From NCBI RefSeq assembly GCF_041956535.1, contig NW_027192192.1, positions 1,500,646-1,564,645 on the forward strand: 64,000 bases of DNA, in the 5' to 3' direction. Positions 42,886 to 64,000 of this stretch are shown one piece after another (the first letter of the stretch is position 1; the number at the start of each line of letters is the position of its first letter). The stretch is from Calcarisporiella thermophila CBS 279.70 (taxonomy: Eukaryota > Fungi > Calcarisporiellomycota). The notes below the pieces were generated by a model. That model had not been told where the DNA came from and did not search any database. It was given only the letters and a program-made list of their open reading frames with translations. The translations under genes and the position numbers were made by a program.

Positions 42886-44449
42886 ATGGCATCTCAACAA
42901 CAAGACAGCAAAGAAGTGAATCCACTGCGACCACAACATCACTATGTTATAATAATAGGAGCTGGGTTTTCAGGCCTTGGAACAGCAATACGGCTTATGC
43001 AAGAAAATATCCATGATTTTGTTATTCTTGAGCGCGGTAATGATGTAGGGGGAACATGGCGAGACAATAGGTGATGTTAAGACATAATCGCAACAAATCG
43101 AGGTATGGGATACTAATGATGTTTACTAAAAATCGAATAGTTATCCTGGGGCAGCTTGTGATGTACAAAGCGATCTTTATTCCTTTTCTTTTGCTCAAAA
43201 TCCAGACTGGACACGCAACTACGCTCCTCAGCCCGAGATATTTGCCTATCTCCGCTGGTGTGCATCTAAGTACGACGTTTATAAGCACTGTCGTTTCTAT
43301 CATGAGGTTGAATATGCACAGTGGGACGACGCGCGCCAATTGTGGGAAGTGCAAACTTCGCAAGGAACGTATTCTGGGAATTTCGTAGTATCTGGAGCCG
43401 GTGCACTTTGTGAACCTTCTTATCCAAAGATTAAAGGGCTGGCTGAATTCGCCAAAGTGGCGGGTAACAGCGTGTTCCACTCCGCACGTTGGGATCATGA
43501 GCGCGATTTATCAGGCCGCAAAGTAGCGGTAATTGGCACTGGAGCCTCAGCCATCCAGATAATACCGGCTATACAGCCGAAAGTCAAGCAATTGGTGGTA
43601 CTACAACGAACCCCTCCCTGGGTTATTCCTCGTGATGACCGTCCACGGTTCGAACGATGGCTGTTTAGAAGGATTCCAATACTTCAAACAGCAATGCGAG
43701 CGTTTCTTTATATTGTCCGTGAGTTGTTTGTGATCCCGATGAAATATAATTTAACGGCATTCCGTCTGCTCGGCCTACTGCAACTGTATTGGCAAGTAAA
43801 AGACCCGAAGCTGCGCGCGAGGATAACTCCCAGTTATTCTATGGGATGCAAACGAATCCTTATCTCCAATGATTACTATCCAGCGATAACCCAACCAAAT
43901 GTTTCCGTTGTGACCGAAGGAATCGAAGAGATTGAAGAAAATCACATTGTTACTCGAGACGGCGCCCGACATGGAGTTGATACAATTGTTCTTGCCACAG
44001 GATTTCTTGTAACCGACGCACCTACTCCAAACTTCATCCGAGGCCGCGGAGGAAAACTACTTGCCGAAGCCTGGCGTGAGAATATAGAAGCTTACAAAGG
44101 AACTACAATTCCGGGGTTTCCCAATTCATTCATTCTTCTCGGGCCTAACACTGGTTTGGGGCACACATCTCAGATCGTAATGATCGAGGCCCAGATCAAT
44201 TATATTGTCGAAGCAATCAAGTATATGCGGGATCATTCCCAAAGGACCATAGAGGTGAAGAGAGACGCATGTAGAGAATACAACGAAATGATTGCGCGAA
44301 AACTCCGTAATACTGTTTGGACATCAGGTGGATGCAAGAGTTGGTACCAGGACTCCAGTGGCAAAAATCCTGTCGTTTGGCCTGATTATACTTTTGTGTA
44401 TTGGTGGAAAACTCGCCGTTTTGATTTCGAAAACTTTATATTCACATGA
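42886..44449 (+). CDS. Baeyer-Villiger/flavin-containing monooxygenase (cyclohexanone monooxygenase-like), one intron
   Basis: GAGFSG; GGTWRDNS|YPGAACDV across intron 43071-43140; FHSARW fingerprint; GTGASA; ATGF; GCKSWY. Confidence 0.92.
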
Positions 44450-45192: not shown

Positions 45193-46028
45193 CCCTACAA
45201 AAAACCCGCCTGGTGAAAACTGCTAGNNNNNNNNNNNNNNNNNNNNNNNNNNNNNNNNNNNNNNNNNNNNNNNNNNNNNNNNNNNNNNNNNNNNNNNNNN
45301 NNNNNNNNNNNNNNNNNNNNNNNNNNNNNNNNNNNNNNNNNNNNNNNNNNNNNNNNNNNNNNNNNNNNNNNNNNNNNNNNNNNNNNNNNNNNNNNNNNNN
45401 NNNNNNNNNNNNNNNNNNNNNNNNNNNNNNNNNNNNNNNNNNNNNNNNNNNNNNNNNNNNNNNNNNNNNNNNNNNNNNNNNNNNNNNNNNNNNNNNNNNN
45501 NNNNNNNNNNNNNNNNNNNNNNNNNNNNNNNNNNNNNNNNNNNNNNNNNNNNNNNNNNNNNNNNNNNNNNNNNNNNNNNNNNNNNNNNNNNNNNNNNNNN
45601 NNNNNNNNNNNNNNNNNNNNNNNNNNNNNNNNNNNNNNNNNNNNNNNNNNNNNNNNNNNNNNNNNNNNNNNNNNNNNNNNNNNNNNNNNNNNNNNNNNNN
45701 NNNNNNNNNNNNNNNNNNNNNNNNNNNNNNNNNNNNNNNNNNNNNNNNNNNNNNNNNNNNNNNNNNNNNNNNNNNNNNNNNNNNNNNNNNNNNNNNNNNN
45801 NNNNNNNNNNNNNNNNNNNNNNNNNNNNNNNNNNNNNNNNNNNNNNNNNNNNNNNNNNNNNNNNNNNNNNNNNNNNNNNNNNNNNNNNNNNNNNNNNNNN
45901 NNNNNNNNNNNTCTACAAATTATAGTGAAATTGTTGAAAAATTATAAGGAATCGCGAACCTCCTCCATCTTTTCTACATGCTCCTATACGTTTTCTAGCA
46001 GTTTTCACCAGACGGGTTTTTTGTAGGG
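45193..46028. mobile_element. CACTA/CMC-like non-autonomous element spanning the assembly gap, 3-bp TSD CTT
   Basis: 34-bp inverted repeat CCCTACAAAAAACCCG(C/T)CTGGTGAAAACTGCTAG at 45193-45226 and 45995-46028; CTT at 45190-45192 and 46029-46031. Confidence 0.8.
45227..45911. other. Assembly gap (N run)
   Basis: 685 N characters. Confidence 1.
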
Positions 46029-47645
46029 CTTGTAACTAAACAAGAAAATACATCTATGGTCTGAAAATCATTCCAAGTTTTCTGTCAACTAGACTTTTAT
46101 TATCTAATAATATATTCACTATGTCTCGCACCACTCCTGTTCAACGCGCTCACATATCCGTCCTTCTCTAAGAAGGTTATTCCACTCGTGAAATTGCCAC
46201 TCGTGAGGGCACCAGCAGAACAACTGTATCAAGAATACATCAAGATGAAGAGAATGATCCAGAGAGTTCATCAAGAAAAAAAATGGATCGCCCGCGCAAG
46301 TTATCCCGGCGTGATGAAAATAGATTATGCAGGAGCTTGACTACCGGAGAATGTAGGAACGCAGTCAAGGCACAAGGACTTTGGAACGAGACAATTAATC
46401 AGGTTATCTCCGTTAATACTGTTCGCCAGACACTCCATCGCAATGATTTTGTTGCAAGAGTTCGAAAAAAAAGGCTTCTTCTCACAAAAAAGCATCGCCT
46501 CAGGAGATTGCAGTTTGTAAGAAAATATAAGGATTGAACCACTGAAGATTGGAGTCGAGTCATCTTCTCGGATGAGCGCCAAATTCGTATCTTTGGGGAT
46601 GAGGGGCGAGAGTGATACTGGAAGAAGCGTGACGAACCTCTTCAAGATCGCCATATACAACCCGTGATAAAGCATGGAGGCGGAAGCATAATGATGTGAG
46701 GTTGTATGAGCTATTATGGCATCGGATTTTCATGTCGTTTTATAAAAACTCTCGATGCCAAACTTTATCCGCAAATCCTTGATGATGAATTGATGGCGAC
46801 AATCAAGTGGTACAATCTTGACAAGAAAGAAATAATATTTCAGCATGATAACGACTCAAAGCATAAAGCAAAACTCGTCGAACGATGGTTCCAAAGCATG
46901 CAGATCCAAGTTCTTGATTGGCCTTCACAATCGCCTGACTTTAATCCCATAGAACATCTATGGGATGAGGTAAAGAGACGACTGAGGGACAGACTCCCAC
47001 AGATATCGGGAAAGGATGGCCTGTGGGAAAAGGTGAAAACCGTCTGGGAGTCGCTCACAAAGGACGATTGTGTTACGTCGATAAATACGATGCCAAGGCG
47101 GATTCAAGAAGTTATCAATGCTAGAGGCGGATATACTGAATTGTAGTCAGAACGTACTTTATTTATCTTAAATATTGACTATTTGCTATAATGAGTCTGT
47201 GGAGAAAGAGGATAAAATGTTGAAATCATGAGATTTTCAATTTGATAAAATATGTAATTTCCCGAAATATATTAATATTTCTTGAAAGGAGAGTTAGCAA
47301 TGGGCATTCCATGGTATACAGGGGATTAGCAGAGTGAATGGGGTTTTCAATTATACAAGTGCTAAGTATATAGGGGTTGTCTTTGAAGAAATATTTGAGT
47401 TGAATATAAAAATAATAGGGTGTCACGAAACTTTTAAGAGGCACTTTAGATGTAAATAACCTAACCTAATTAGTCTAGAGTGAATGAACTAGGCCCTGTT
47501 CAATTAAGTTACATGGATGAGATGGGATCACGTGTACTCTTATCTTTCGCGCAATATTGCATTACTCACTACCGCTCAGTACTTTTACTAGTTCTCAATT
47601 TTTGGTATCTCATAGCTGGTATTGCATCTTCTATATTAGTTCACC

Positions 47646-49579
47646 ATGGGTTCTTTCCAATCTGTACCTTCTCAGCCCTGCCAAGCCAAGGAACATTTTG
47701 AGCCTCCACCACCATACTCTATAGATTCAGAAAGTAGCTTTGAGAAGGAGCAATTGTATCCTTCTAGTGATGAGCTGACTAAGGACCATTTTGACCATTT
47801 CAAGTAAATTAATACGTCTATCACATATTACCATAGGTTTTCTTTAGAATACTAGCTAAAGATTCTGAGATGTAATAGGAACGATTTTTCCAGCAATCCC
47901 AAGAACCTCCTTGCTGTAAATGCAGTGACTCGGAATGATATTTCTGCTGTTACTATCTCAAGAGAGGCAGTTATTAAGAACATCCCCGTGTTTTCCACAA
48001 AATTGGAGCTCGAAGGTATCATCCCTTTCAGAAATAATTTTAATGCGGTTGATTGATTAGAACTAACAATTTCTTCTACAATATAGGCAAAGCAACCAAT
48101 CAAAAGTCAAGTGGACGCTGCTGGCTCTTTGCAAGTACCAATGTGTTGCGATTAATTCTCATTAAAAAGTAAAATATATGTCATGTGGAGTTAATTCATA
48201 TGTTTAGTGTTCATTTCTTGTTAATATCTATGATCATACAGATACAATCTCGAGGACGATTTCGAATTGTCTCAGTCTTACCTCTACTTTTACGATAAGC
48301 TGGAAAAGTCTAATTGTAGGCCTTTTTTAATATTACTTACCGCAAACTCAACTATAGTGATTTCTCATACTTGCTTTTAATTTTATATGTCTAGATTTTT
48401 TGGAATCTGTGCTTGATCTTATTGAGGTGGACGTGAATGATCGAAATCTTGCCGCTCTCCTCTCTGATCCTGCTAGTGATGGTGGCCAGTGGGATATGTT
48501 GGTTAATCTAATAAATAAATATGGCGTTGTGCCGAAGTCGGGTAAGAAAGATTAATGTGTTTTTCATTTTTTTCCTCATCTAATGTCACTGTAATTGGAT
48601 TTGTAGTGTACCCTGAAAGCTTCCAATCTTCTAATTCAAAGCGTCTATCATACTTGGTGGTCGTCAAGCTTCGAGAATTTGCAGCAAGACTTCGTAAAGA
48701 ATATCGTAATGGAAAGAGCTTAGAGCAGTTACGGCGCTTGAAAATGAGCATGATATCTGATATATATCGTATTTTGGCCATTTCCCTTGGCACTCCTCCA
48801 ACTGAATTTGATTGGTGCATTTACAACAAGAGTAAGAAGCTGATCGAGCACCGGTCGCTCACTCCAAAGAAATTTTTCGAAAATATCATAGGCTACCCGG
48901 TATATATGATTTATGCACTAGTTTTAATAGACACCTGGTCTAATGCTTCGACCGTTATAGCTTCAGGACACGTTGTCGCTTATTAATGATCCTCGCAATG
49001 AATACAATAAGCTTTACACAGTAAAATATTTGGGTAATATCGTAGGGGGTCATCCCATACGATATGTTAATATTCCCATTGAGGAGATGAAAGCTATTGC
49101 TTGCCGTGTTCTTCAATCCGGCAGACCTGTGTGGTTTGGGTGCGATGTGGGACAATTTAGCCACAATGAATTTGCTACTATGGATACTGCACTTTACGAC
49201 TACGAATCCACATTCAGCGTCAAACTTGGATTAACCAAAGCAGAGCGCATTTTGTATGGTGAAAGTCGCATGACCCATGCTATGATGTTTACTGGTGTTC
49301 ATATCGAGAACGGTCGACCTGTCAGGTGGCGCGTTGAGAATTCGTGGGGTGATAATGGTCCTGAGAAAGGATTCTGGATCATGAGTGACGCGTGGTTTAG
49401 CGAATTTGTCTATCAGGTGGGTTATTTTTCAAATGAATTTCTGAATCTTGTTTTAATTTCTTCTCTCTATCTTTGTCCAGATTGTGGTAGAAAAACGTGA
49501 TGCTGGCAAGTATGCGGATGTACTGAAGCAAGATCCTATTGCATTTCCCCCGTATGATCCTTTTGGAAGCCTAGCGTAA
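47646..49579 (+). CDS. LAP3: Bleomycin hydrolase / cysteine aminopeptidase (C1B), multi-exon
   Basis: NQKSSGRCWLFA, FELSQSYL.FYDKLEKSN, SDGGQWDML, PVWFGCDVG, MTHAM, WRVENSWG, C-terminal YDPFGSLA*. Confidence 0.93.
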
Positions 49580-50696: not shown

Positions 50697-52157
50697 ATGA
50701 ATTGCTTTCATAAACATCAAGATCTTTACGATACTCTCGTTCAACATCTGCCCTCTTCCAGCGTGATTTTCCAACATCATCCAGATTATAAAACCGTTAG
50801 TTCCTCCTGGAATCTCCGCACACCTTATAAACCATATGTATTCGTTCAACCTGCTAATACCAAAGAAGTTCAAGCGGCAATAAAATGCGCCAGACAATGC
50901 AACGTAACACAAGTGGCAATTCGCAGCGGAGGACATTCTTTTGAAGGTGCTAGCTTGGGAGGTAGAGGTGGGCATGCCTTGGTGATCGATCTTGTAAAAA
51001 TGAATGGTGTAACAGTCGACAGTGAGAGTGGCATCGCTACAGCTGAGGGTGGGGCGCTATTGGGCAAAATTTATCTGGAGGCTTGGAACACCGGAAAATA
51101 TGCTCTTTCGGCAGGGTCATGTGTCGGTGTGGGCGTGGCTGGACAGGCTTCTTGCGGGGGTTATGGGCATTACACTCGCACTCACGGAATTCTATCGGAT
51201 AGAGTTCTCGAGTTTGAGGTGGTAACTGCTGATGGGAACGTATTAATCGCAAACAACGAGCAAAACGAAGATTTGTATTGGGCTCTGCGCGGTGCAGGCA
51301 CAGGTTCCTTCGGGATAATAACCAAACTAAAGATTAAATTACACCAAGCCCCTGACACCATTATCAACTTCACTCTAGACTATCAACTTGGATGGATTAA
51401 CTTCAAACATGTCTTTAAAGCTTTCCAAGATTACTGCTTGTCCGCTTCCACCAAAGTCAATCCGATGATGGTAATCCAATTTGGAAATTTCACCCTCGTA
51501 GGTTCGATATTAGCAGATTCCAAGGAAGAGGGTGATGCATTAGTAGAAGATATGCTGAAAAGACTTCCACCTCCAACAAACAAGGTTATCCAGAAAGTGT
51601 CTTACATTGAATCAGTTGTGGGGCTATCTTTAACCCAAACATCGGCACCATGGTGGGATGATCTGAGGCCATTGAAACGAGAGGGAGAAGAGAAGCGTCG
51701 CTGGATGAAGATTAAAAGCGGATATATTCCAGAAGCGTTGCCAGATGAATTTATTTCAAAGCTTGGAAAGCTTGCCAACAGACAGTGTGCAACTGGGCTC
51801 AGAGTTCAGCTTCTTTGTCTAGGGGGTGCGGAGAGCGAAACTCCTGTTGACTCTACTGCTGTCAGCCGTCGTGGGTGTGCATATTTAATGGGAATGTCCG
51901 TATGGATTATGGATGACGAGGAAGATCCTGTGAACGGAGCAATTGAAGAAGCAAATTACCGTCTTCCTTGGCTCAATCAAACATTCGAGGCCTTTTACCC
52001 ATACATGGATGGTTGCTATATTGGTGATGATGATGCCGATGTTCAGAATCTATACTACAACTTCTTTGGCAAGCATTTTCCTAAACTTCAAAGCATTAAG
52101 CGTAAATATGACCCGGAAAATATTTTCAATCATCGATTGAGTATTCCACCTCAATAG
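50697..52157 (+). CDS. FAD-linked oxidase, berberine-bridge-enzyme/VAO family, intronless
   Basis: RSGGHSFEG (His for covalent FAD), AGSCVGVG (Cys), DLYWALRGAG..SFGI, C-terminal FGKHFPKLQSIKRKYDPENIF. No clear signal peptide. Confidence 0.92.
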   Translation: MNCFHKHQDLYDTLVQHLPSSSVIFQHHPDYKTVSSSWNLRTPYKPYVFVQPANTKEVQAAIKCARQCNVTQVAIRSGGHSFEGASLGGRGGHALVIDLVKMNGVTVDSESGIATAEGGALLGKIYLEAWNTGKYALSAGSCVGVGVAGQASCGGYGHYTRTHGILSDRVLEFEVVTADGNVLIANNEQNEDLYWALRGAGTGSFGIITKLKIKLHQAPDTIINFTLDYQLGWINFKHVFKAFQDYCLSASTKVNPMMVIQFGNFTLVGSILADSKEEGDALVEDMLKRLPPPTNKVIQKVSYIESVVGLSLTQTSAPWWDDLRPLKREGEEKRRWMKIKSGYIPEALPDEFISKLGKLANRQCATGLRVQLLCLGGAESETPVDSTAVSRRGCAYLMGMSVWIMDDEEDPVNGAIEEANYRLPWLNQTFEAFYPYMDGCYIGDDDADVQNLYYNFFGKHFPKLQSIKRKYDPENIFNHRLSIPPQ

Positions 52158-52316
52158 AAGATCCCATAAGCTATTTATAGAACTATTTAGCATATTGTAA
52201 ATTCATTAGAAATATAATAGTACATACTGTATATGAAAAGCTTTTAATAAATTTTTGAATTATATTTCTTTAAAAGGATAATTCACCAGGGACTCTCACA
52301 ATTCTTGCATAAGTAT

Positions 52317-52731
52317 CCCTATAAGAAACCACCGTAATCAAGCCCCGCGTAAATTTATTGGACTTTTTAATAAAATTTCCAGATAAGCTATTGGCTCAAG
52401 TAAAATATTGACATAGTGATTGCGGAAAGCGGGAAAGGTGCCTTGTTGAATACGTATTCATCTCGGCCCAGTGAAATTACTTCGTCAAATGCAAATTGAA
52501 AATTGTTGCAGATTAAATTTCAAACTAGTTACATAGTAGTTGAATCTTTGGAACGTATTACAACACACACCTATGTTTTTACAACCATAATAGCGTATAA
52601 ATTATTTCCTTGTCACCCACATAGAATACTCTCCCTTGAATCCAACCTGCCCATCTATTTATTGTCTCCACCCAGAAAAAATTCGACAAAGAGGAATGTT
52701 TATGGTATTATTGCTGTATATTTCTTTAGGG
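52317..52731. mobile_element. Possible degenerate CCCTA-ended element
   Basis: CCCTATAAGAAA at 52317 and TTTCTTTAGGG at 52721-52731; flanks TAT/AAT (one mismatch); no long TIR. Confidence 0.3.
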
Positions 52732-53213
52732 AATGTACTCTAAGTGGGAATCAGTAGCATGACTGATAAGGTGAGTAGAGGTGAGAGCAAAGGAAAGATA
52801 TGTCAAAATAATCATAGAATTGTGGCTAGTAAAAGGGATCACCAAAGAGATATTCAGTGAAATGGAGTCGATAAAATAAATCATCATTTTAGTGTGCCAT
52901 CAGGTAACTGCAGGTATTCTATAATAAATGCTTGATCAATGGAAGCCCAAAAGAGTAATTCAAATCAATAAGAACAATAAGCAAATAGCATGGAAATTCC
53001 GCTTTCTATATGCCAGATAACGAACATTATTCTAGCAATTTCCAACTTATTAATCTAATGAAAGTCGCGACACAAACTTCTCCTAGATTTATAGAGAGAA
53101 AGATTATATTGTATACGACTTAAAGGCCAATTCATTACAACTTGTGAAGAAATAATCGAGTTGAGTATAAATTAATATGGGAAGTCAAAATATCTGACAG
53201 ACACTATTACATC

Positions 53214-55143
53214 TCAGGAACGCTTCTCAAACTGTATCAAAACATCTTCAAGACGCAGCACGCCGAATAAATTATTCACCTGCAGACCGGTTGTATGGAG
53301 CGAATTTTCAGGCAATTTCCAAGTATAGTTACGTACTGTAATATTTGGCATATATCCATACAAAACAGGTTCGTAAAGAAAACACAAATGGAGCATGTAG
53401 GAGCATAAGGGAACGTTCAGGCTTCAATTATTTTTCCCTTATATTTAAAAGGTAGAGGCATTAGAAATTATATAGAGCAATGTCTCCTTATGCATCTACA
53501 TGCTCCTCTGTGTTTGCTTTACGAACCTGTTTTGTAGGAATAAAATGTTAAAATAAATATGAGCACTCCAGAATAATAATAAATCGTGCTCACATAGCAT
53601 TGAAAGCACTATGCGTTGCTCAGTGAACGAAAACTGCATCCCTAACTGTTTTTTCCAATAGGGATTTAGTAATAGTTTTCTCTCCGCAGACAATACGAGT
53701 ATCGGGACTTACGCAAATGCGCGAGCCACCGCCAAAAGCTAACTAGGCATCTCGAGGTGGATTATTCTCAGGGTAGAATCTCTCCGGCCAGAATCTTTCT
53801 GGATCTTTCCAGTGCTTAGTGGAATTTTGCATGGAACATATGTCTGCAAACAAGTAAGTGCCCTTGGGAATGGCAATTCCGTCAAATTCGACTGGTTCCA
53901 CTACAACCCTAGGCCCAATGTTAGGAAAGGGAGGATGCATACGGAGCGACTTTTTTTACAAACACTTTACGTAAACCTCTTTTAAAATATGAGCACAGAA
54001 TTTGCATGTACCTCTCTGATAATACAATCAATATATTTCATATTTCGGCAATTCTTGATACTAGGTATTTGCAGAGAACCTGTTGCAGTAAAGATGCTAT
54101 TAATCTCTTGACGAGCTAGCTCCTGGATTTCTGGGATGAGAGCTAGGTAATAAATGGCAACGGAAAGAGAACTAAAGGTGGTTGTTAGATTAACATTGCA
54201 TTCTGGTATTTTTTTAATAACTTATATTTACGCCTGGGTTGTGTCGTGACCAGCAAGGAAAAATACCATTAGATTATCCTAACATAGTCAACATGAACAA
54301 ATCATGAAGGTACTGGAGTCCAGCAGTCAAATTGAAAGATATTTACCTTTATATCAGTCGTAGTCCATCTATTCTCATCATCGCCTGATTCTGCTTCTGC
54401 TTCTATCATCAATCTAAGCATGTCTTTGTGTTGATCGCCCTCATCCTTGTAGATTCCATCCTGAATTTCTTTCTTTCTTTTCTCAATGATGTCAAATACA
54501 ACCTAAATTTGTTTAAAAGTAACAAGAATTTTAAAGCAGGATAAAACAACTCAAGTTTGGATATGATTACCTCGTTCAAATCGGCAAAGGATTGAACGGC
54601 ATGTTTGTCGAAAAGACTTATTATTGGATCAGCTCTTGGAAAAAGAATACGAACCGGGTTTGCGAATCCTTCAAATGTGCCTTCATAACATTTGTAATAT
54701 CTGTTTTCTGGATTTTGGAGAGCGTTGAAATTGAATCTAAATAGCGTCTTTCCGAGAGCGTCCAAAGTAAGTCTGCGCATGAGTATAGGTATGTTGACGG
54801 CATCTGCAGATATAATGGCTTGATCTAGGTGTTCAAAAAGCTTGTATGTGCATTCTACAAACGGCTGCGTGGGAATAGTGTTACGGAACACAGGATTAAG
54901 GACCATTATAGAAAACATTACATGCTTAGCTTGAGTCCAATCTCATTGATGAAGAAAATAATTAAAGTACCTTTCTGTGACGTTTCCACTCCTAAATACG
55001 AGACATCAAAATCAATTAATCTCATATACATAGAGAGAGAAACAATCATGATACCTCTCCATTGCTCATTGCCACATTCTCTTCACCGAAGAAATCGAAG
55101 AAGAATTTCCCCTGCGCCAGAGTGTTAACTTTGGGAATAGAAT
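53214..55143 (-). pseudogene. Cytochrome P450, multi-exon, 5'-truncated
   Basis: EWKRHRK, AGHDTT, E|SLR, PERF, FGGGSRIC|LGMQFS heme motif. N-terminal exons are replaced by gypsy sequence; the expected acceptor before VLNPVFR reads TG, not AG (54904-54905). Confidence 0.8.
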
Positions 55144-55204
55144 CTAGGAGAGAATTATTTGTTGTTCCTCACCGATCTTCTATTTTCATAAAGAGCTTCA
55201 TCTA

Positions 55205-56810
55205 CCATTCGAACCCTGTTACAAGCGATTTGACGACCAACGCCGATTATGTGTTCCTCAGACCAACTCGCTGATCAACAAAATAATGATGAACGCTCAT
55301 GATGCGATTTATGCTGGTCATTTGGGAATCGACAAAACCCGGGATGGAATTCAACGCGACTACTATTGGCTGAATATGCAGAAGACAGTACGACGATACA
55401 TTAAGGCTTGTGATTCATGTCAACGAGTGAAATCAACGAACAAGAAGCCAGCAGGATTATCGCAACCATTAGAAATTCCAACTGCAAGATGGGACTCGAT
55501 TTCGATGGATTTTATTGTTCAACTACCGAAGACAAAAAGAGGATTCGATGCGATAACAGTTTATGTCGACAGACTCACCAAGCGAGCTCACTTCCCCCCA
55601 GCAAGACAACCGATAATGCAGTATATGCAGCCCATACATTTTTCCGAGAGATCTTTAGACAACACGCCATGCCAACCAGTATTATTAGCGATCGTGATCC
55701 GAAATTTACATCGAAGTTTTGGCGGACCATAACGCAGAAACTCGGCATAAAGACCAAACTTTCCTCGGCTTACCACCCACGGACGGATGGACAAACGGAA
55801 CGCATGAATAGAACCCTCGAAGACATGTTACGACACTACACTGCACATAAACAGGGTAATTGGGACGACCTTTTGCCCATTGTTGAATTTGCGTATAACG
55901 ATTAGATGCACATTTCCACCAGAACTACACCCTTTACGTCCGACCTAGGACGATCACTACGAAACCCCGATATGACCCCCGCCACGAAAGAAAATCCTAC
56001 CGCAGAAGAACTTGCCGAACAACTTAGATAACTTAGAGAAGACCCAATCGACTATCACCCAAATGATCAAGGATGAACAAGAGCGACTACGAGAATACGC
56101 TGACCAATAACGATCCGATGTAGAGTTCCAAGAAAATGACCAACTTATGATAAGAACCACACACTTGAAACCGGAAGTGTAATGCAACGCTCCCTCGAAA
56201 AATTATCACCACGATTTGCGGGACCATTCAAGGTTCTCAGTCGAATCGGTAAAGTTGCATTCAAACTAGAGCTGCCAGCGAATGTCAGAACGCACTCAGT
56301 ATTCCATTTTTCCGTTCTTCTAAATATGAACAAGCCACAGACGATCGCAAAGCGCCACCACCTCCACTCATAATCGTTGATGGAGAAATAGAATACGAAG
56401 TCGAAAAAATCCTCGACGAGCGAAGACGGTACAATCGCAAGGAGTACTTAGTTAAATGGAAAGGCTACGATGACCACGAAAATACTTGGGAACCCGTGAA
56501 GGGCATGACCAGAGCTCAAGTCCCTATAAGAAGTGGGCATAGGGAAAACATAGGGAAATAATATGGAACAGATGCGGAACACCTCACTTTCCCTATAATT
56601 TCCTTAAAATTTCCTTTTATTTCCTCTAATTTTTCTATAAATTCCAAATCCTTACCCATATAAAAATCCATATAAAATCCATTAAAAATTATAGGAAATA
56701 TCAGGAAATCATATGGAGAGTGAGGTGTTCCCTATTTTTTCCCTATGTGACTTCCTATAGGGAGACGTTATCAGAGAGTACGAGAAAAACAAGAAGACCG
56801 AGAAAGCTTT
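55205..56810 (+). mobile_element. Ty3/Gypsy chromovirus pol fragment (integrase plus chromodomain), degenerate
   Basis: HDAIYAGHLG..CDSCQ (HHCC), [38 protein letters not shown]...YLVKWKGY...TWEP. Frameshifts and stops; no LTR recognised. Confidence 0.92.
56522..56762. mobile_element. CCCTA-ended MITE-like element inserted in the gypsy chromodomain
   Basis: CCCTATAAGAAG...CTTCCTATAGGG, flanks AGT/AGA. Removing it restores the reading RAQDVIREYEK. Closely related to 59349-59580. Confidence 0.8.
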
Positions 56811-57168
56811 ATCCGAATAAACGGAAACGTGAACATCCCCATTTTTGATATTTTATTATTTTTTCCATGTCTATGAATAAAGCACGATTTGGGCTCCGAA
56901 GGAGCAGATATCCTCCAGCTTCGTTCCCCTTGGGCTCTCGCCCAAAATGAAAAAATTAAGCGTGGACTGCGGCCGCTGTCCACAGTATAAAGTATTTGCA
57001 AATTCAAATTAAGAAATTTCAATATTGATCTCTGTTTATTTCCAAAATCTTAGAGCTCATATTGAAATTCATATACCAAAATACATTTAAAGAACCATTT
57101 TGTTACGAATCGACAACTAGAAATGGAATAGAAATCACACCCGCGTCGGAAATAACAGTATGTTTCAC

Positions 57169-59145
57169 TTAAATAGCGCCAACTGCATCGTAATGTGGCC
57201 CAGAAGCAGCAGAAGTGGCTTTGGCATCACTGGCTCGGACCAGTGCAGCAACTTCATGTACCTCCAATTTGGGATTCCACTCCACCTGACAGTTCTCAAT
57301 CTTTCTCACCTTTCCGCACGTGTAACATTTTCTCCAATCCGGTCGTGAAGCGACCCAACTTCCACAGTGCTCACACCTCCTAGAGAATCGATCCTTCCAA
57401 TTCTTTTCTGGTAAGTAGTTGAGCTCAAGATCATAATATCGAAGAAGGCCATTCCATCTGAAGTTGAAGCGGTTTGAAGCCACGGCCTCACGTTTAATAG
57501 CATTCGAAAATTCGATCAATTCATTAACAGTTTCAATCGGTACGGGGTCGTATAACGGACCATCAAGTAGCTCAATAGCTTTTTTCGCTACCGTTACGTA
57601 CTCTGGCACTTGAGATCCCCAAGCCCAATTTTTGGAGTGGTCGACATAGGTTGCAAATGTGAGGTTGTAGTCTTGTCGGATGAGTTGCCATCCAGGAATG
57701 CCTATGCCAGCAAAGAACTGCCAAAGGGTGGAAACTTGGGGTCCAAGCTCGGGATGCCGGAAACAGACATAGTTGAACTTGTTCATCTGGTGCAGCGAGG
57801 GGATAAGCTTGTTACAAAAGACTTCATATGGCTTGAACAACTCTAAGCGCTTCTCTGGATTCGACGTTGCCAAGGCCTTGTGAGTCAGTTCAGCTGCGTA
57901 CGTGGAGGTTGACATGCTAGCGCTGATTCCAGGAGAGTGAAGGGGATTAGTGAACCCCACTGCATCGCCTATGGCGACCCATCCAGGTCCCGAAACTTTG
58001 GGAGATTGAAAAGCAAGTTGCTTGCGAATGAACCAGGTGGTGTTAGATCCATATGGATTTTCAATCAACTTGTAATTCTCCATCACCCGCGAGATCATAG
58101 GGTAACGATGAACCCAATAGTTAAACTTCTGCTCAGCTTCCTTTGTTCCATATGGCGTCAAGTCATCAGGATACCTAGCGTCATCGCGAACCGCAAACCC
58201 GATACTAACAATCCACTGGAGCTTGAGACCAAAGATTTTTGCAAGCTCTTCAGACGAGGGAATTTCATCACCAGGTGTCTTGTTCTCAGCATGGTCAAGC
58301 AAATAGTTCATCATATCCATTAAGTTAGGAATAGGACTACCTTCCCAGGAAGGCATGCGAATTAACCAGGCCCATCCCTCGGGAAAGCAGAGGTGGTTGG
58401 TGTGGTCACCCTCGAAAAATCTAAGGGGAATCTTGGTCTCATCTTTGCAAGTAAAGTAACCCCAATATGCGTTGACATTCCAACCGTCAAATCGTTTGAT
58501 GCGAGCCTCTTTGGAAGTAAATTGTCGAAATCTGCCCGTGGCGTCTACTAAGTACTGCGAAGCGATAGTCTTGGAGATTTTAGACTCGTTTTCTACGACT
58601 TGGATGAGGTTTCCAGCACCAGAAATCTTTGTTCCCTGAATATTAATTGAATGCCCATGGAATACATTGACACCATGTCGTTGGGCATAAACTGTGAACA
58701 GCAGCTCGCTGGTGGAACGCTCAATCTGGTAACCGGATAAAAATAAGCAAGGAGTTCCATTGCTGCAGAAATCGGTATAGTGTTCTGGATCTTCTGAATC
58801 AAAAAAATAGAAGCAAAGGCCATCCTTGAGGCCAAAAATGCGTAGGAGCATTTCCGCGTTGAGCCCCATCATCTTGCACCAAAGGGAAAATAGGGGAAGC
58901 GTGCTTTCCCCAATTTTATAGCCCGGCTTGGGCGATTTCTCCACGACAGTGACGCTTATACTAGGATCAAAGCATTTAGCATGAATAGCGTAGATGAGAC
59001 CGTGAATACCGCCACCAGCAACGACTACATCCTGGTTTTCAGGAAGCGAAGGGCTGTCATTATTGAAATTAAGGATCTCTGAGGTCGAAAATCTTTGTTC
59101 CTGGGCAAGTTTGGCAAATTTATGGTGCGGATCGACTGCAATCAT
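57169..59145 (-). CDS. Flavin-dependent halogenase, intronless, 658 aa
   Basis: VVVAGGGIHG (FAD binding), KIGESTLP, LKDGL, DATG, GWAWLIR (WxWxI motif), IGDAVGFTNPLHSPG; extra C-terminal CxxC...CxxC. Confidence 0.88.
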   Translation of the reverse strand: MIAVDPHHKFAKLAQEQRFSTSEILNFNNDSPSLPENQDVVVAGGGIHGLIYAIHAKCFDPSISVTVVEKSPKPGYKIGESTLPLFSLWCKMMGLNAEMLLRIFGLKDGLCFYFFDSEDPEHYTDFCSNGTPCLFLSGYQIERSTSELLFTVYAQRHGVNVFHGHSINIQGTKISGAGNLIQVVENESKISKTIASQYLVDATGRFRQFTSKEARIKRFDGWNVNAYWGYFTCKDETKIPLRFFEGDHTNHLCFPEGWAWLIRMPSWEGSPIPNLMDMMNYLLDHAENKTPGDEIPSSEELAKIFGLKLQWIVSIGFAVRDDARYPDDLTPYGTKEAEQKFNYWVHRYPMISRVMENYKLIENPYGSNTTWFIRKQLAFQSPKVSGPGWVAIGDAVGFTNPLHSPGISASMSTSTYAAELTHKALATSNPEKRLELFKPYEVFCNKLIPSLHQMNKFNYVCFRHPELGPQVSTLWQFFAGIGIPGWQLIRQDYNLTFATYVDHSKNWAWGSQVPEYVTVAKKAIELLDGPLYDPVPIETVNELIEFSNAIKREAVASNRFNFRWNGLLRYYDLELNYLPEKNWKDRFSRRCEHCGSWVASRPDWRKCYTCGKVRKIENCQVEWNPKLEVHEVAALVRASDAKATSAASGPHYDAVGAI

Positions 59146-59348
59146 TGAAATTCGAGTGGGTTTAAGTTATAATTAGGTTTGTATGCTGGTATAGAATATG
59201 AAAGATGAAATTTATCAAATAAAGAGAAATGAACTGATGTAAAGATCTTCGAATAAATAGTAGCTTCAGGGGAGAGCTCCTAAGATGGATTTATATCGCA
59301 ATTTCATGGGGATGCGCAGTTATTATTTCGATGAGATAGTGGTATTGA

Positions 59349-59580
59349 CCCTATAAGAAATGTCCATAGGGAAACCATAGGGGAATAATGTGGAACACAT
59401 GTGGATCACCTCACTTTCCCTATAATTTCCGTATAATTTCCTGATATTTACTGTAATTTTTCTATATTTTCCAAATCCGTACCCAAATAAAAATTATTAA
59501 AAATTATAGAGAAAGTGAGGTGATCCACATGTGTTCCACATTATTCCCCTATGGTTTCCCTATGGACACTTCTTATAGGG
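59349..59580. mobile_element. CCCTA-ended MITE-like foldback element with ~80-bp TIRs
   Basis: CCCTATAAGAA(A/G)TGTCCATAGGGAAACCATAGGGGAATAATGTGGAACACATGTGGATCACCTCACTTTC occurs at both ends in inverted orientation. No matching TSD (TGA/ATC). Confidence 0.88.
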
Positions 59581-59740
59581 ATCTGTTCCACACCACAACC
59601 CTATCCGAGAGAGATTTGTTTTCAACTCATATCATAATATTGATTCATACAATCTTATTTTTCCCATCTGATTTTAGTAATCTCTTTATATGCTCTGAGT
59701 CCTTTTCCTCTTCGTTAAGTTATAATCTACAGCGTTCAAG

Positions 59741-60109
59741 ATGGTCGTATCGCGCATTCCGCATCTCTTCATTTCCTTCTCAACTGGCCATGGTCATGCT
59801 GTGCCAATCATATGTTTTGCGCGTCGCCTAATTGATATGCCAAATGCACTCGCAGGCTCAGATGTCACCCCTGGGCTTCGATGCATAGTAACGATAGCCA
59901 CCGTCAACTCATATGTTGATGACCTTGTCGCGACGGGGCTCATTTCTTCACCCGATGAAAATGGCGTGATATTCCGCGGTTCCTATGGCGAGGTGCGCCT
60001 CGCGAAGTTATACGATCTCCCTAAGGTCGATCCTCAGGAGGACGACAAATACCTCCCCCCCCCAATGGTTTCCAATGTTATATCGAATCTGCGCATCAGA
60101 CTGGCATAG
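59741..60109 (+). pseudogene. UDP-glycosyltransferase (GT1-like) N-terminal exon, truncated or interrupted
   Basis: PHLFISFSTGHGHAVPIICFARRL...VTIAT resembles the GT1 N-terminal GHxxP motif. No continuation or PSPG box was found downstream in the window. Confidence 0.6.
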
Positions 60110-61255
60110 CGCGCGCCCCTACAAAAAGCCTTTTTAAGGAAATTACTTAGAAACCTATGCCAAAGTTGTAGGGTACAGTGTAAAAATCTATAGAATTGCG
60201 GTAAAAATTGACCGGTGGGTATAAGAAAATTGGTAGGTCACCATATAGAAAAGTCACGTGACTATACCCTTTTGGCTTGGATATTAGGTATTTGGCCTGG
60301 AAGGAACTCGTCAATTTTTGCTTGGCCGTGACGTCCGGCCGAAATAAAATCAAACCAAGAATTTAACTTATAAATAATTAAATAAACAAAGGATTTATCT
60401 TTAAAATTTGTTATTTTTGTAATAATAAGCATTAGAGTAAACATAAAAAATCATACTAATATTGAAATGAAGTGCTGCGTATGCTCACTTCAACTTCTGC
60501 GTAAAATTCTTTTTACTCCAACTCTTCGGTTCTTCTATAATACTTAGTATTTCGGTGAATAAGCATTATAGCCTAGAAAATAATACAATACACTTGATAA
60601 TGTAAATATTTTAATAGGATTCATTCTTTCTAATTATTTGGGTACAATCTATTCAAGAAATTGTGTAGATATTAAACTTACAGCAGCTGCATAGTTAATG
60701 CGTCTGAAATCATCTAAATACATATATGTATTTATGTCATTTCAACGAGCCCAGGATGTATCCATCCTTTGTTCGGAGTCGGCCCTACTGAAGTCTGTTC
60801 TTAGAACATCTAATTTAAAGCTATCCAATTCATCCACTCTCCTGCCTTGGAAGAAACGAAAGCAGAGAATACAGAGGATATGACTAAAGCAAACGATGGT
60901 TATAAAAGATAGTGAAATAAATTTTAGATTTTATATTGTACTGGGCATCATAGCGAAATTTCGATAATTGAAATTTCATTTTTATTGTATAACTCACGAC
61001 ATAAAAGGTATTTTGCAAGTCCATGTAGATTGTTGGTTGTGATATGGATAGCTGTGTTTGCTTTTCGTAGCGCAACTTAGTATAGCTAGATTTGAGGATA
61101 AGAAGGGAAAATGATGTGAAAAATAAAAATTATTCGATCACATTCCGAGGGCAGTTCACAAGTATAAGACAAGTTGACACTACGAATCGTAACACTCAAT
61201 AAAATAATCCTCAGCCACTTTTTGCTCACACTGGTTACCGTTGGGCTACTTATCA

Positions 61256-63750
61256 TGTCATCTCAAGATGAAAATGCTGGCGAGGTCTCTCTTCGAGCGC
61301 AGATGGAAATCCTTAAGACCATGCTTGAGGAAATCAAAACTAAACTGGAGGGAAACAAGCAGCGAAAGCAGTAGTACTGGGGAAGAGGAGCCTGACGAGC
61401 TCATATGCACTGCTAAGGCCAAACACTACCAAAGGATCCCACAATGGGTGGCGGACGCGTTCCCTCAAATCCTGGACCCCTTTTTTCACCCGAACACCGA
61501 ATTCGGGACAGGGACCTTCGCGCAGAATGGTGGGCCCGTGCGCCAGCCATTCGCGATCGCGTTTATGACGCGCCAGCGATGCCAAGCAGCTTGCTTCAAG
61601 TGGCATCACATCAATCCAAAGCAAAAGATCGTTCACTGGCAGACTTCCAATCTCGTCTGGCCTTAACTACGAGAACAATCGACGCGCTTTTCCATTCGGT
61701 CGCGGGATTCGTGGAAAATAATCGAGACGTGTTCCCAGATACTCTTTGCCACTATTGGCTGCAACTATATCGGGACATCACTTTGCAGATGCGAGACCAT
61801 CTCACTACAATGTCAGAGTCAAGGCTCGGAGAGATCAGACAAGCGAGTCAGTATGGCGCCAGCCTCCGCTATATAACTCCGGAGCACACCCTCATCCCCG
61901 AGGAGATGGCCAGTGAATTCACGAAGGAACGGAGAGCTACATCCAAATCAAAAGCGAAGACGCGTAAACAGCGTACAAGTTATAGAAATTCCAGGAAACA
62001 TAACGGAATCCGTAGCCGTTCGTATTCCAGCAACGGAGGGAAGAATGAAGAGAAAGAGCCAAAAACCTATAAAGAAGGGTGGTATTGATGATGCTCCCCT
62101 TCAACACACACCAGTAGGAGGAAGGCTAGCACTATTCGCGGACTCTTGGAAGGAAATCACGAGAAAACCGTGGGTACTTACGTTACGTTCACGGAAGGGG
62201 CTATGATGGGATATTACAGGCCCGCAAAACAATGGAAAAGTCCGAGTCCATTGAACTTATCAAAAGAACAAGAGCAAGCAATAGCGCGGGAAGTCGAAGA
62301 ACTGTTGGAGAAGAAAGCTATAGAAAAAGTCAGGCGAAAGAATGTGGGGTTTGTCTCCAGGCTATTCACCATTCTCAAGGAGTCAGGGGGTCTCAGGCCG
62401 TTCCTGGATCTGAGAGAACTAAACAAGTTTATTCCCCCGATGCACTTGGAGACCTTGGCTCACCTTCTTCCACTCATCAACAGAGGCGCTTATATGACAT
62501 CGGTGGACCTCTCCGACGCATAGCTATATGTTCCAATCCACAAGGACGAACGCAAGTTCATGGCGTTCGAATGGAGGGACACTTGGTATTGGTTCAAATC
62601 ACTCCCGTTCGGCCTCTTATCTGCTCCGAGGATTTTTACGAAGATTCTTCGCCCGTGCCTCGCTCATCTTCGCTCGAAAGGAGTGGGGATATCAGCCTAT
62701 TTAGACGACCTGATTATCCTGGCGAGGTCAGAGCAGAAAGCGAAAGAGCACACGCTTCTGGCGGTAGAGCTACTAGAGAAGCTAGGGTTCATGATCAGCC
62801 GCAAGAAATCAATCCTCACACCATTCCAAAAGATGGAGCATCTGGGATTCATCCTCGACACGGAGAGCACGTCGCTGACTCTGCCAGGAGCAAAATCAGA
62901 GATATGAGAAGGATGGCAAAATGCATGATGAACAAAGCTCCTTCAGCACGCACTCTGGCTTCTTTCCTAGGGAGAATTGTGACAGCAACCCTGGCACTCC
63001 CAGTGGGGCGGCTATATCACCATCATTTGGCGAGAGACAAGGATGCTGCTGTTCGGAGCTATGGCTGGGATGCAATGGTAAGATTGAGCTCAAATTCCAT
63101 GAAGGAACTAAAATTTTGGTCGTCCCAACTGGAGAAGTGGAATTGGAGTACCTTTCTTCTTCTGGATTCTTCAGCAGTCATATACACCGATGCGTCAACC
63201 ACAGGAAGGAGTGCAACCTTCCAGGGCAGGTCTGTGTTCGGCCCTTGGAATTCGGAGGAAAGGACACTCCACATAAATGTCCTGGAGATGATGGCTGTGG
63301 GACACGCACTAAGGAGTTTTCCAGAGCTGACTCATTGCGCGGTGGCAATCCAGTCAGACAACTTGGCTGCAGTAGCTTATGTTGCCAGTCAAAGGGGAAC
63401 GCGATCGCCACAAATGCACAGGGTGACGAAATCCAATTGGGAAGAGTGCTTTCGCAGGAAAATAACGTTGACAGCGAAGCACATTCCAGGGGAGAACAAT
63501 ACGAGTGCAGACAAAGCATCGAGAATGAGGACCTCAGCAAGTGGAGGATCGACAAGAATTATGTGAAGAGAATAGAGAGGAAATTCGGTCCGCATGACAT
63601 AGATCTGTTCGCGGACAAGGTGAACAAAGTTTGCAAGAGGTACTTATCGTGGAGCTGGGATCCGAAAGCAGAAGCTCAGGACGCACTATCGATACCCTGG
63701 AAGCCGCTCGGAGTACCTTGGATCAATCCTCCTTGGACACTAATTCTAAG
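61256..63750 (+). mobile_element. DIRS-type (tyrosine-recombinase class) retrotransposon, degenerate: gag-like, RT, RNase H, methyltransferase-like domain
   Basis: PVGGRLALFADSW, LRPFLDLRELN, DLSDA, LPFGL.SAPRIFTK, AYLDD, YTDAS, HINVLEM, SDN, ADKASR, DLFAD...WINPPW. Stops and frameshifts; YR not visible in the window. Confidence 0.9.
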
Positions 63751-64000
63751 AAAAGTTCCAGATTCTCCATGCTTTCTACATTTTCCTATAGATATTCCCC
63801 ATGCACACTCTTAGTTGAGCTTCAGGCGAAGCGCCTAGTAAAGGCAAGGAGGGAATTCGTACAATACGTTAGTCCCTCTCATTTCTATCCAGGACACACA
63901 CATCCTGGTCCCGGATGAAGAACTTATGGCTAATCTGAGCGAGCACCAGCCGTACTCCAAGGATACGCTGATGTAGATGACGTAGCCCGCAGTCTATTAC

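Follow-up and report, generated by a model that had tools for sequence, protein, structure and literature searches.

A halogenase locus of Calcarisporiella thermophila as a probable rearranged and partly decayed member of a three-copy isocyanide synthase gene-cluster family

Introduction

Gene clusters built around an isocyanide synthase (ICS) have only recently been recognised as a class of fungal secondary metabolism. The xan cluster of Aspergillus fumigatus depends neither on a polyketide synthase (PKS) nor on a nonribosomal peptide synthetase (NRPS); its backbone enzyme, XanB, is a fusion of a PF05141 and a PF02668 domain and has been proposed to convert tyrosine into a vinyl-isonitrile intermediate in two IsnA/IsnB-like steps (PMC5974471). 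Copper affects the ICS clusters of this species (PMC5974471). The present work concerns a locus of the fungus Calcarisporiella thermophila CBS 279.70 at which a gene of the same architecture accompanies a flavin-dependent halogenase. The locus occupies the right end of a stretch of 64,000 nucleotides (hereafter, the window; C2:1500646-1564645, where C2 is contig NW_027192192.1 of assembly GCF_041956535.1), the right edge of which is 6.1 kb short of the end of the 1,570,740-base contig. We propose, with a probability of roughly 65%, that it belongs to a family of ICS gene clusters present in three copies in the genome, and that this copy has been rearranged and has partly decayed. Coordinates given without a contig are window positions, and those called window-equivalent run past its right edge on the same contig. 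The genome measures 28 Mb, and the species was grouped in Mucoromycota for comparisons between phyla.

The closest described systems each share some of the parts. The genes of the xan cluster that were considered (XanA, XanB, XanC, XanE, XanG and others) include no halogenase or glycosyltransferase; its Dit2-like cytochrome P450, XanG, carries out a dimerisation and XanA is an isocyanide hydratase, an activity assigned to the DJ-1/PfpI family (PMC5974471). No intact P450 is found at any of the three Calcarisporiella loci, and no DJ-1/PfpI gene near them. The rhabduscin pathway of Xenorhabdus and Photorhabdus follows the same order of an ICS, a decarboxylating iron/2-oxoglutarate-dependent (Fe/2OG) desaturase and a glycosyltransferase, and leads to a glycosylated tyrosine-derived vinyl isonitrile (PMC13005658, PMC9467999). 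It differs in being bacterial, in having separate ICS and dioxygenase genes and in lacking a halogenase, while the UDP-glycosyltransferase (UGT) of Calcarisporiella is plant-like and is broken in the window copy. The paerucumarin genes pvcABCD of Pseudomonas aeruginosa likewise pair a PvcA-type ICS with a PvcB-type dioxygenase of the TauD family, acting on tyrosine isonitrile. We know of no halogenase or glycosyltransferase in the pvc cluster. Isonitrile formation by IsnA/IsnB-type enzymes is combined with chlorination in the hapalindole and welwitindolinone alkaloids of cyanobacteria, where the producers are bacterial and the halogenases are of the Fe/2OG type. WelO5 is such a non-heme iron halogenase (PMC8407142). 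The closest characterised relative of the halogenase itself, MalA of Malbranchea aurantiaca, is the first zinc-binding flavin-dependent halogenase (PMC8407142) and catalyses a late step on an NRPS-derived prenylated indole alkaloid (PMC9144378, PMC8407142), whereas the partner of the Calcarisporiella enzyme is an ICS.

Among the titles and abstracts of the literature searched, none describes a fungal ICS paired with a halogenase. The word stems halogen, glycosyl and Mucoromycota do not occur in a survey of ICS clusters (PMC10153163), isonitriles go unmentioned in a 2022 review of fungal halogenation (PMC9144378), and a 2026 paper, in which an isonitrile-selective probe is available, describes ICSs as scarce in Mucoromycota and reports the first isonitrile of the phylum (PMC13005658). 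The parts are of known kinds, and their combination is undescribed in the literature searched.

The sister loci and the isocyanide synthase

Three copies of the halogenase gene are present in the genome, all with open reading frames (ORFs), those on contigs C30 and C47 encoding proteins 94% and 86% identical, respectively, to the window copy. At both C30 and C47 the halogenase is transcribed divergently from a gene for a two-domain ICS-TauD protein (isocyanide synthase-Fe/2OG dioxygenase), which is followed by a UGT gene and then by a gene of the major facilitator superfamily (MFS). At C30 the approximately 3.6 kb between halogenase and UGT hold DIT1_PvcA and TauD exons, and are followed by a UDPGT ORF of 525 aa (100% identical to VTP21DRAFT_7467) and an MFS/TRI12 ORF of 591 aa; the order is the same at C47, where the UDPGT ORF is of 540 aa (paralogue VTP21DRAFT_9059). 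Comparison of the window and C30 DNA indicates that the halogenase and the start of the UGT were duplicated together. The UGT and MFS genes of C30 and C47 have diverged with ratios of nonsynonymous to synonymous substitution rates (dN/dS) of 0.15 and 0.17, respectively, at a dS of approximately 0.8-0.9, and the cluster has been kept as a unit at these two intact loci.

PF05141, the ICS domain, is found at only four loci in the genome, and each of the three halogenases has one of them within 10 kb. For the window copy the domain maps to C2:1568470-1569428 on the minus strand, 3.8 kb past the right edge of the window, with three exon matches of 47-97 bits and no stops. It belongs to an ICS-TauD segment that begins 2.4 kb past the window and approximately 7.3 kb to the right of the halogenase, with 89% DNA identity to the C30 gene. 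This segment comprises four open exons that cover positions 1-201 of the PvcA model and, in the last exon, positions 114-266 of the TauD model, with 87-95% protein identity to the C30 exons and dN/dS values of 0.13-0.17. The searches with ICS-TauD and with the P450 used single exons, and the intactness of ICS-TauD thus refers to the level of the exon. That the two domains form one protein is inferred from their order, strand and spacing and from the C30 locus tags, VTP21DRAFT_7467 and 7469 flanking a single gene. The iron-binding triad HxD...H of the dioxygenase is represented by the motifs PFHYDG and NMALHHTR.

These findings bear on an annotation made earlier from the letters of the window alone (the original prediction), in which the halogenase, a glycosyltransferase and several oxidative genes were taken as a candidate natural-product cluster that may make or detoxify a halogenated, glycosylated aromatic compound. 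Its suggestion that the scaffold enzyme lies outside the window or is not a PKS or NRPS holds on both counts for the ICS-TauD gene, which is found past the window edge and beside the other two halogenases, and the pairing of halogenase and glycosyltransferase is that of a real and recurring secondary-metabolite cluster, being seen again at C30 and C47. A glycosylated product is consistent with the intact UGTs of the latter two loci, but not with the frameshifted stump left in the window.

The C47 cluster additionally carries, at C47:29489-30692 and C47:44080-46175, an arylamine N-acetyltransferase adjoining the halogenase and a second ICS-TauD. This second, more divergent ICS-TauD is located approximately 10 kb off and shows two stops in the matched stretch of its last exon. 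A copy of the miniature inverted-repeat transposable element (MITE) described below is found at C47:36955-37222, between ICS-TauD and UGT.

The halogenase

The window halogenase matches the MalA' structures of PDB entries 5WGR and 5WGU over nearly its full length, including the C-terminal extension (E of approximately 4e-239, residues 4-638 against chain residues 3-644), and is approximately 53% identical to MalA. The FAD-binding GxGxxG motif is conserved as GGGIHG, Lys107, within GLKDGLCFYF, corresponds to the catalytic Lys108 of MalA, and the WxWxI motif reads GWAWLIRMP where MalA has GWVWVIRLP. Cys111, Cys127 and His248 are also conserved (MalA Cys112, Cys128 and His253), as is a C-terminal CxxC...CxxC arrangement of four cysteines, in which RRCEHCGSWVASRPDWRKCYTCG aligns with RQCSGCGAWLQLRPDWKKCHSCG of MalA. 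We take these four cysteines to be a zinc site. The roles of the GxGxxG motif, the catalytic Lys and the WxWxI motif have been described (PMC9144378, PMC8407142), that of Lys108 for MalA (PMC9144378). On these grounds the window protein is classed, from its sequence, as an intact MalA-type, zinc-ribbon-tailed flavin-dependent halogenase.

A departure from MalA is found at its substrate-positioning Glu494, which aligns with a Gly beside a seven-residue insert, GIGIPGWQLIRQDYNL, in a loop whose alignment is uncertain. The insert is not present in MalA and is common to the window halogenase and to the ICS-linked proteins of lichen fungi discussed below. The changed loop suggests a substrate or pocket different from that of MalA and gives no sign of inactivity. 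The MalA reference row used in the alignment (P0042) has Asp at position 494, as in the E494D variant of PDB 5WGU (PMC8407142), rather than the wild-type residue, which matters for judging conservation at this position.

Pairwise dN/dS values among the three halogenases are 0.09-0.12. With C47 used to polarise the changes, the window branch has accumulated 15 nonsynonymous and 30 synonymous codon changes, and the C30 branch 11 and 29, respectively. Thus, the window halogenase shows no sign of relaxed constraint, while the UGT stump, with 10 nonsynonymous and 13 synonymous differences over 108 codons, does.

Rearrangement and decay of the window copy

Homology of the window to C30 is limited to positions 57035-59340 and 59577-60111, and the approximately 3.6 kb that separate the corresponding C30 sequences are missing in between. 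What is missing there is found, in reverse orientation, at window-equivalent 66436-69170. The junction 59340/59577, where ICS-TauD sits in C30, is occupied by a foldback MITE of a family with at least 12 copies in the genome, two of which bracket the halogenase. ICS-TauD has thus been removed from beside the halogenase, with the MITE at the junction, and now has an inverted position on the right; recombination between MITE copies could have displaced it. The UGT has been reduced to a stump of 125 codons with a 1-nt frameshift near 60056-60060, and no UGT sequence is recognisable after 60111, from where a mosaic of dispersed repeat fragments takes over. A tblastn search of the window with the 525-aa C30 protein accordingly returned two high-scoring segment pairs in different frames (residues 2-109 and 108-125; KYLPPPMVSN as compared with KYPPNGFQCY across the shift). 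No MFS gene was seen in the readable C2 sequence, and the window copy retains only the halogenase and ICS-TauD among the cluster genes. Because its UGT is broken, the window locus cannot glycosylate on its own.

The extent of the damage raises the question of whether the whole locus is a dead remnant, with the halogenase being a recently orphaned duplicate that is still open by chance. The broken UGT, the MFS gene not seen, the displaced ICS and the transposon debris at the contig end are what such a remnant would look like, and the rearrangement may postdate most of the substitutions in the halogenase and the ICS. Against this stand the 658 open codons of the halogenase with all catalytic motifs kept, a ratio of codon changes on its branch that resembles that of the C30 branch and is unlike that of the UGT stump, and the open exons and low dN/dS of the displaced ICS-TauD, so that a remnant dead throughout is considered unlikely. 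In the preferred reading, that of a partly decayed cluster with two genes still maintained, the window is a natural example of how MITEs and retrotransposons active near the end of a contig can make a cluster decay, and it is useful mainly because it leads to the intact C30 and C47 loci.

Predicted chemistry

The gene content, the rearrangement and the selection described above are read from the sequences themselves, while the substrate, the order of the reactions and the product are predictions. In its intact form the cluster comprises a MalA-type halogenase divergent from an ICS-TauD protein of XanB/IsnAB architecture, a plant-like UGT of the phenol-glycosylating type and a TRI12-like MFS exporter. 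The ICS would first convert an aromatic amino acid, most likely tyrosine, into its isonitrile. The only NCBIfam match of ICS exon 1 is the model for the L-tyrosine isonitrile synthase PvcA, with 72.9 bits, a value far under the whole-protein cut-off, and exon 2 has no match in the PDB at E <= 0.001. Either tyrosine or tryptophan may be the substrate. The fused dioxygenase would then decarboxylate and desaturate this product to an aryl vinyl-isonitrile. The best PDB matches of its exons are PvcB and PIsnB, PvcB being the best for the C-terminal exon. The outcome of the reaction has been related to two positions, with Lys or Arg at Lys107 and Asn or His at Asn188 of PIsnB in the enzymes that form vinyl isonitriles, and Leu and Cys in those of the PvcB type, which yield isocyanoacrylate (PMC9467999). 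The Lys of FHYDGCFKM and the His of LRFHEPW align with residues 107 and 188, respectively, of the PIsnB chain (7TCL) in the copies on C2 and C30 and in the first of the two on C47, so that the Calcarisporiella dioxygenase has PIsnB-type residues at both positions rather than the Leu and Cys of PvcB, by a rule derived from bacterial enzymes and here extrapolated to a fungal fusion.

In the following steps the halogenase would chlorinate or brominate the ring and, at the intact loci, the UGT would glycosylate the phenol and the MFS protein export the product. The relatives of the UGT outside the genome are plant-type enzymes of 24-40% identity, several of which are named hydroquinone glucosyltransferase. 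By taking into account the ICS-dioxygenase architecture, the PIsnB-type residues and these phenol-type relatives, we infer that the product of the intact loci would be a halogenated, O-glycosylated aryl vinyl-isonitrile, similar to rhabduscin with a halogen added. The window locus could give at most the halogenated aglycone, or could borrow the UGTs of the other loci. To our knowledge, a halogenated isonitrile from a fungus would be the first of its kind. Four ICS-dioxygenase genes and three MalA-type halogenases in a thermophilic mucoromycete would provide a testable route to a new class of compounds, and the enzymes are candidates for thermostable catalysts of late-stage halogenation and phenol glycosylation.

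Homologues in other fungi and origin of the cluster

After the copies in the genome itself, the best matches of the halogenase are found in lichen-forming Teloschistales (approximately 59-65% identity), and none of the 120 matches listed comes from another member of Mucoromycota. Three lineages have an ICS gene at a distance of 3-9 kb from their halogenase homologue, namely a lichen-like metagenome contig, Usnochroma carphineum and the basidiomycete yeast Parajaminaea, and all three loci also contain genes of the MFS and DJ-1/PfpI families. None of the DJ-1/PfpI matches in the Calcarisporiella genome is close to the three clusters. The divergent orientation of halogenase and ICS seen at C30 and C47 recurs in the lichen loci. 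A lichen gene for a protein of 550 aa beside the halogenase was considered as the counterpart of the UGT and rejected, there being no similarity between them.

A block consisting of a MalA-type halogenase, an unknown gene of approximately 550-680 aa, an MFS and a DJ-1/PfpI gene recurs in two JGI metagenome contigs, Usnochroma carphineum, Gyalolechia and Parajaminaea, and some of these loci also carry an ICS, a glutathione S-transferase (GST) or GFA gene, and an intradiol dioxygenase. It looks like an undescribed cluster family of lichen fungi and a basidiomycete yeast, and the recurrence of halogenase and ICS in these organisms suggests that a wider cluster family awaits description.

The distribution of the halogenase invites the proposal that the cluster, or at least this gene, was recently acquired by horizontal transfer from a lichen-forming ascomycete. 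The identity of up to approximately 65% with Teloschistales proteins, the absence of other Mucoromycota from the matches listed and the intronless gene within an intron-rich genome are in favour of it. In the phylogenetic tree the three Calcarisporiella halogenases group together as the sister of the ascomycete clade, with a support of 94 in the Shimodaira-Hasegawa-like approximate likelihood ratio test (SH-aLRT), rather than standing outside Dikarya. However, they are outside the ascomycete clade and not nested in it, and a tree that unites Ascomycota and Basidiomycota without Calcarisporiella is not rejected by the approximately unbiased (AU) test (p 0.105). Moreover, the ICS partners are only approximately 40% identical, the lichen ICS proteins revealed no TauD motifs, and the UGT has no close relative outside the genome. 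Thus, a recent transfer from lichens is not supported by the tree and the AU test and is considered improbable; vertical descent with many losses may be the alternative.

A further possibility is that the adjacency of halogenase and ICS has no biochemical meaning and that the halogenase acts on an unrelated substrate, such as an indole alkaloid. MalA itself operates in an NRPS-derived indole-alkaloid pathway, and six homologue loci, from Penicillium to a chytrid, have no ICS within 10 kb. On the other hand, a chance association is difficult to reconcile with the rarity of the ICS, with four loci in 28 Mb and a scarcity throughout Mucoromycota (PMC13005658), with its presence less than 10 kb away from the halogenase both in this genome and in three more lineages, which belong to two other phyla, and with the divergent orientation common to C30, C47 and the lichen loci. 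The replacement of the MalA Glu494 loop by an insert common to the ICS-linked lichen proteins points in the same direction, making a meaningless adjacency rather improbable.

Several observations nonetheless weigh against a dedicated ICS-halogenase cluster as proposed here. At six of the nine halogenase homologue loci examined outside the genome (Penicillium, Trichoderma, Collybiopsis, Bogoriella, Gyalolechia and a chytrid) an ICS is absent within 10 kb, and where it is present in lichens the identity of only approximately 40% in the PvcA domain, together with the failure to find TauD motifs, indicates that the chemistry may differ. The amino-acid substrate of the ICS is not legible from the sequence, and MalA acts on an indole. 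The three Calcarisporiella loci are duplicates, so that their shared content counts as one observation. The inventory of neighbours covers the readable sequence, with some neighbours unseen, the letters being N in the 2.1 kb that adjoin the window on the right (window-equivalent 64001-66076), in a stretch beside the C30 halogenase and in parts of C47. Moreover, a misassembly might in principle account for the inverted ICS-TauD so close to the end of the contig.

A broader view, which goes beyond the assignment of the locus to an ICS cluster family, can be put forward tentatively, the odds being somewhat against it as a whole: C. thermophila would make a halogenated glycosylated aryl vinyl-isonitrile, and the MalA-type halogenases would have originated in isonitrile pathways, with the pairing to ICS conserved across Mucoromycota, lichen Ascomycota and Basidiomycota and the role of MalA in indole chemistry being a later recruitment.

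Neighbouring genes

The oxidase, the P450, the halogenase, the divergent glycosyltransferase start and the Baeyer-Villiger monooxygenase (BVMO) of the original prediction were all found where it had placed them (table 1), and the contrast it drew in gene structure was confirmed, the oxidase and the halogenase being single ORFs and the P450 being split into several exons. The membership of the oxidase, P450 and BVMO in the cluster was not supported, and its interpretation is, overall, partly supported.

Table 1. Coordinates and properties of the features of the locus.
Feature	Position	Strand	Description
FMO/BVMO-like ORF	43340-44449	+	Pfam FMO-like (flavin-containing monooxygenase)
Tc1/mariner DDE transposase	46283-47146		
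Bleomycin hydrolase exons	48555-49500		Pfam Peptidase_C1_2
BBE-like FAD oxidase	50610/50697-52157	+	one ORF, Pfam FAD_binding_4 and BBE
P450	exons ~53211-55159	-	pseudogene, several exons
Ty3-type retrotransposon integrase relic	55286-56373	+	Pfam Integrase_H2C2, rve and SH3_Tf2-1 on broken ORFs
Second copy of the MITE family	56521-56746		repeat search and own-genome DNA search
Flavin-dependent halogenase	57169-59145	-	single 658-aa ORF, intact, intronless
Foldback MITE	59349-59580		80-nt arms, 98% complementary
UGT (GT1) 5' stump	59735-60111	+	matches the first 125 residues of the 525-aa UDPGT-domain protein of C30
Repeat-fragment mosaic	60112-62025		own-genome DNA search, many copies of 80-99% identity over query 5-1913
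ICS-TauD gene	window-equivalent 66436-69170 (outside the window)		inverted relative to halogenase and UGT

The P450 is a pseudogene in this assembly. A conserved Trp nine codons ahead of the heme Cys has been replaced by an in-frame stop, TAG (53745-53743), the window reading PPRDA*LAFGGGSRIC (asterisk, stop) where the two closest paralogues, on contigs C15 and C6, have DAWLAFGGGSRIC and DAWMPFGGGSRIC, respectively, with the common pattern DAW[LM][AP]FGGGSRIC. The match to the C15 paralogue extends no further than 55159, beside the integrase relic that sits between the P450 remnant and the halogenase, and the upstream exons of the paralogue have no counterpart here. Thus, the reading frame is broken at the heme loop and the exons for the N-terminal anchor are absent. 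An apparent frameshift after the heme Cys was rejected as a further lesion, since the Cys codon directly adjoins a GTAAGT donor, and splicing to a CAG acceptor gives CLGMQFSFTEQ, as expected of an intron. No P450 paralogue was found at any ICS locus in the genome.

The oxidase is an intact, intronless member of the BBE-like flavoproteins (Pfam FAD_binding_4, 84 bits; BBE, 38 bits) with PpBBE1 as its best PDB match (1.9e-50). The SGGH and GxCxxVG motifs are present in the translation, as IRSGGHSFEG and SAGSCVGVGVAG, respectively, and we take their His and Cys to be the sites of covalent FAD attachment. There is no copy at C30 or C47, and elsewhere in the genome the gene has just one close copy, a pseudogene at C10:503187-503878. 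The nearest relatives of the oxidase are found in Actinobacteria (42-51% identity; Sciscionella, 51%; Nocardia, 40-49%) and in Burkholderia (42%), while among fungi a few ascomycete proteins reach approximately 36-44% and those of other Mucoromycota approximately 26-37%, making the gene a candidate for bacterial-to-fungal transfer. The neighbourhoods of two of the homologues, one from Aspergillus and one actinobacterial, contain neither an ICS nor a halogenase.

The BVMO-like ORF scores best with a bacterial model, that of PtlE-like Baeyer-Villiger enzymes in NCBIfam (116 bits, below the cut-off), and its region has no DNA match at C30 or C47. The transposase and the bleomycin hydrolase, a housekeeping peptidase, lie between it and the halogenase. 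The oxidase, P450 and BVMO are thus bystanders in a transposon-rich contig end, and their membership in the cluster is not supported. That the oxidase, P450, halogenase and glycosyltransferase, with or without the BVMO, work together on a halogenated glycosylated aromatic compound is very unlikely. In favour of it, they are of typical tailoring families and span no more than 9.5 kb (16 kb if the BVMO is counted), and a Trichoderma halogenase homologue has a FAD_binding_4 gene approximately 10 kb away. Against it, the P450 is interrupted by a nonsense codon and has lost its 5' end, and only a frameshifted stump is left of the UGT. The sister clusters contain no copy of the oxidase or of the P450, and no DNA match to the BVMO region was found there. 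The oxidase relatives are mainly bacterial and in unrelated contexts, and between the genes lie relics of transposons and a housekeeping peptidase.

Other features of the window

The first 30 kb of the window contain ordinary genes, among them those for RRM proteins, a subtilase and a kinase. An apparent ORF of 244 aa at 45213-45947 and a dip in GC content at 44-46 kb are artefacts of a run of N at 45227-45911. Beyond the repeat mosaic, two overlapping plus-strand ORFs in different frames (62232-63814) lie in a region that is mostly unique in the genome and GC-richer (0.49). Residues 314-432 of the first give a weak RNase H/RVT_3 match, which is followed directly by a match to Dam-like N6-adenine methyltransferases (2.8e-9). 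The pair may represent one gene with an intron or a frameshift, running on beyond the window.

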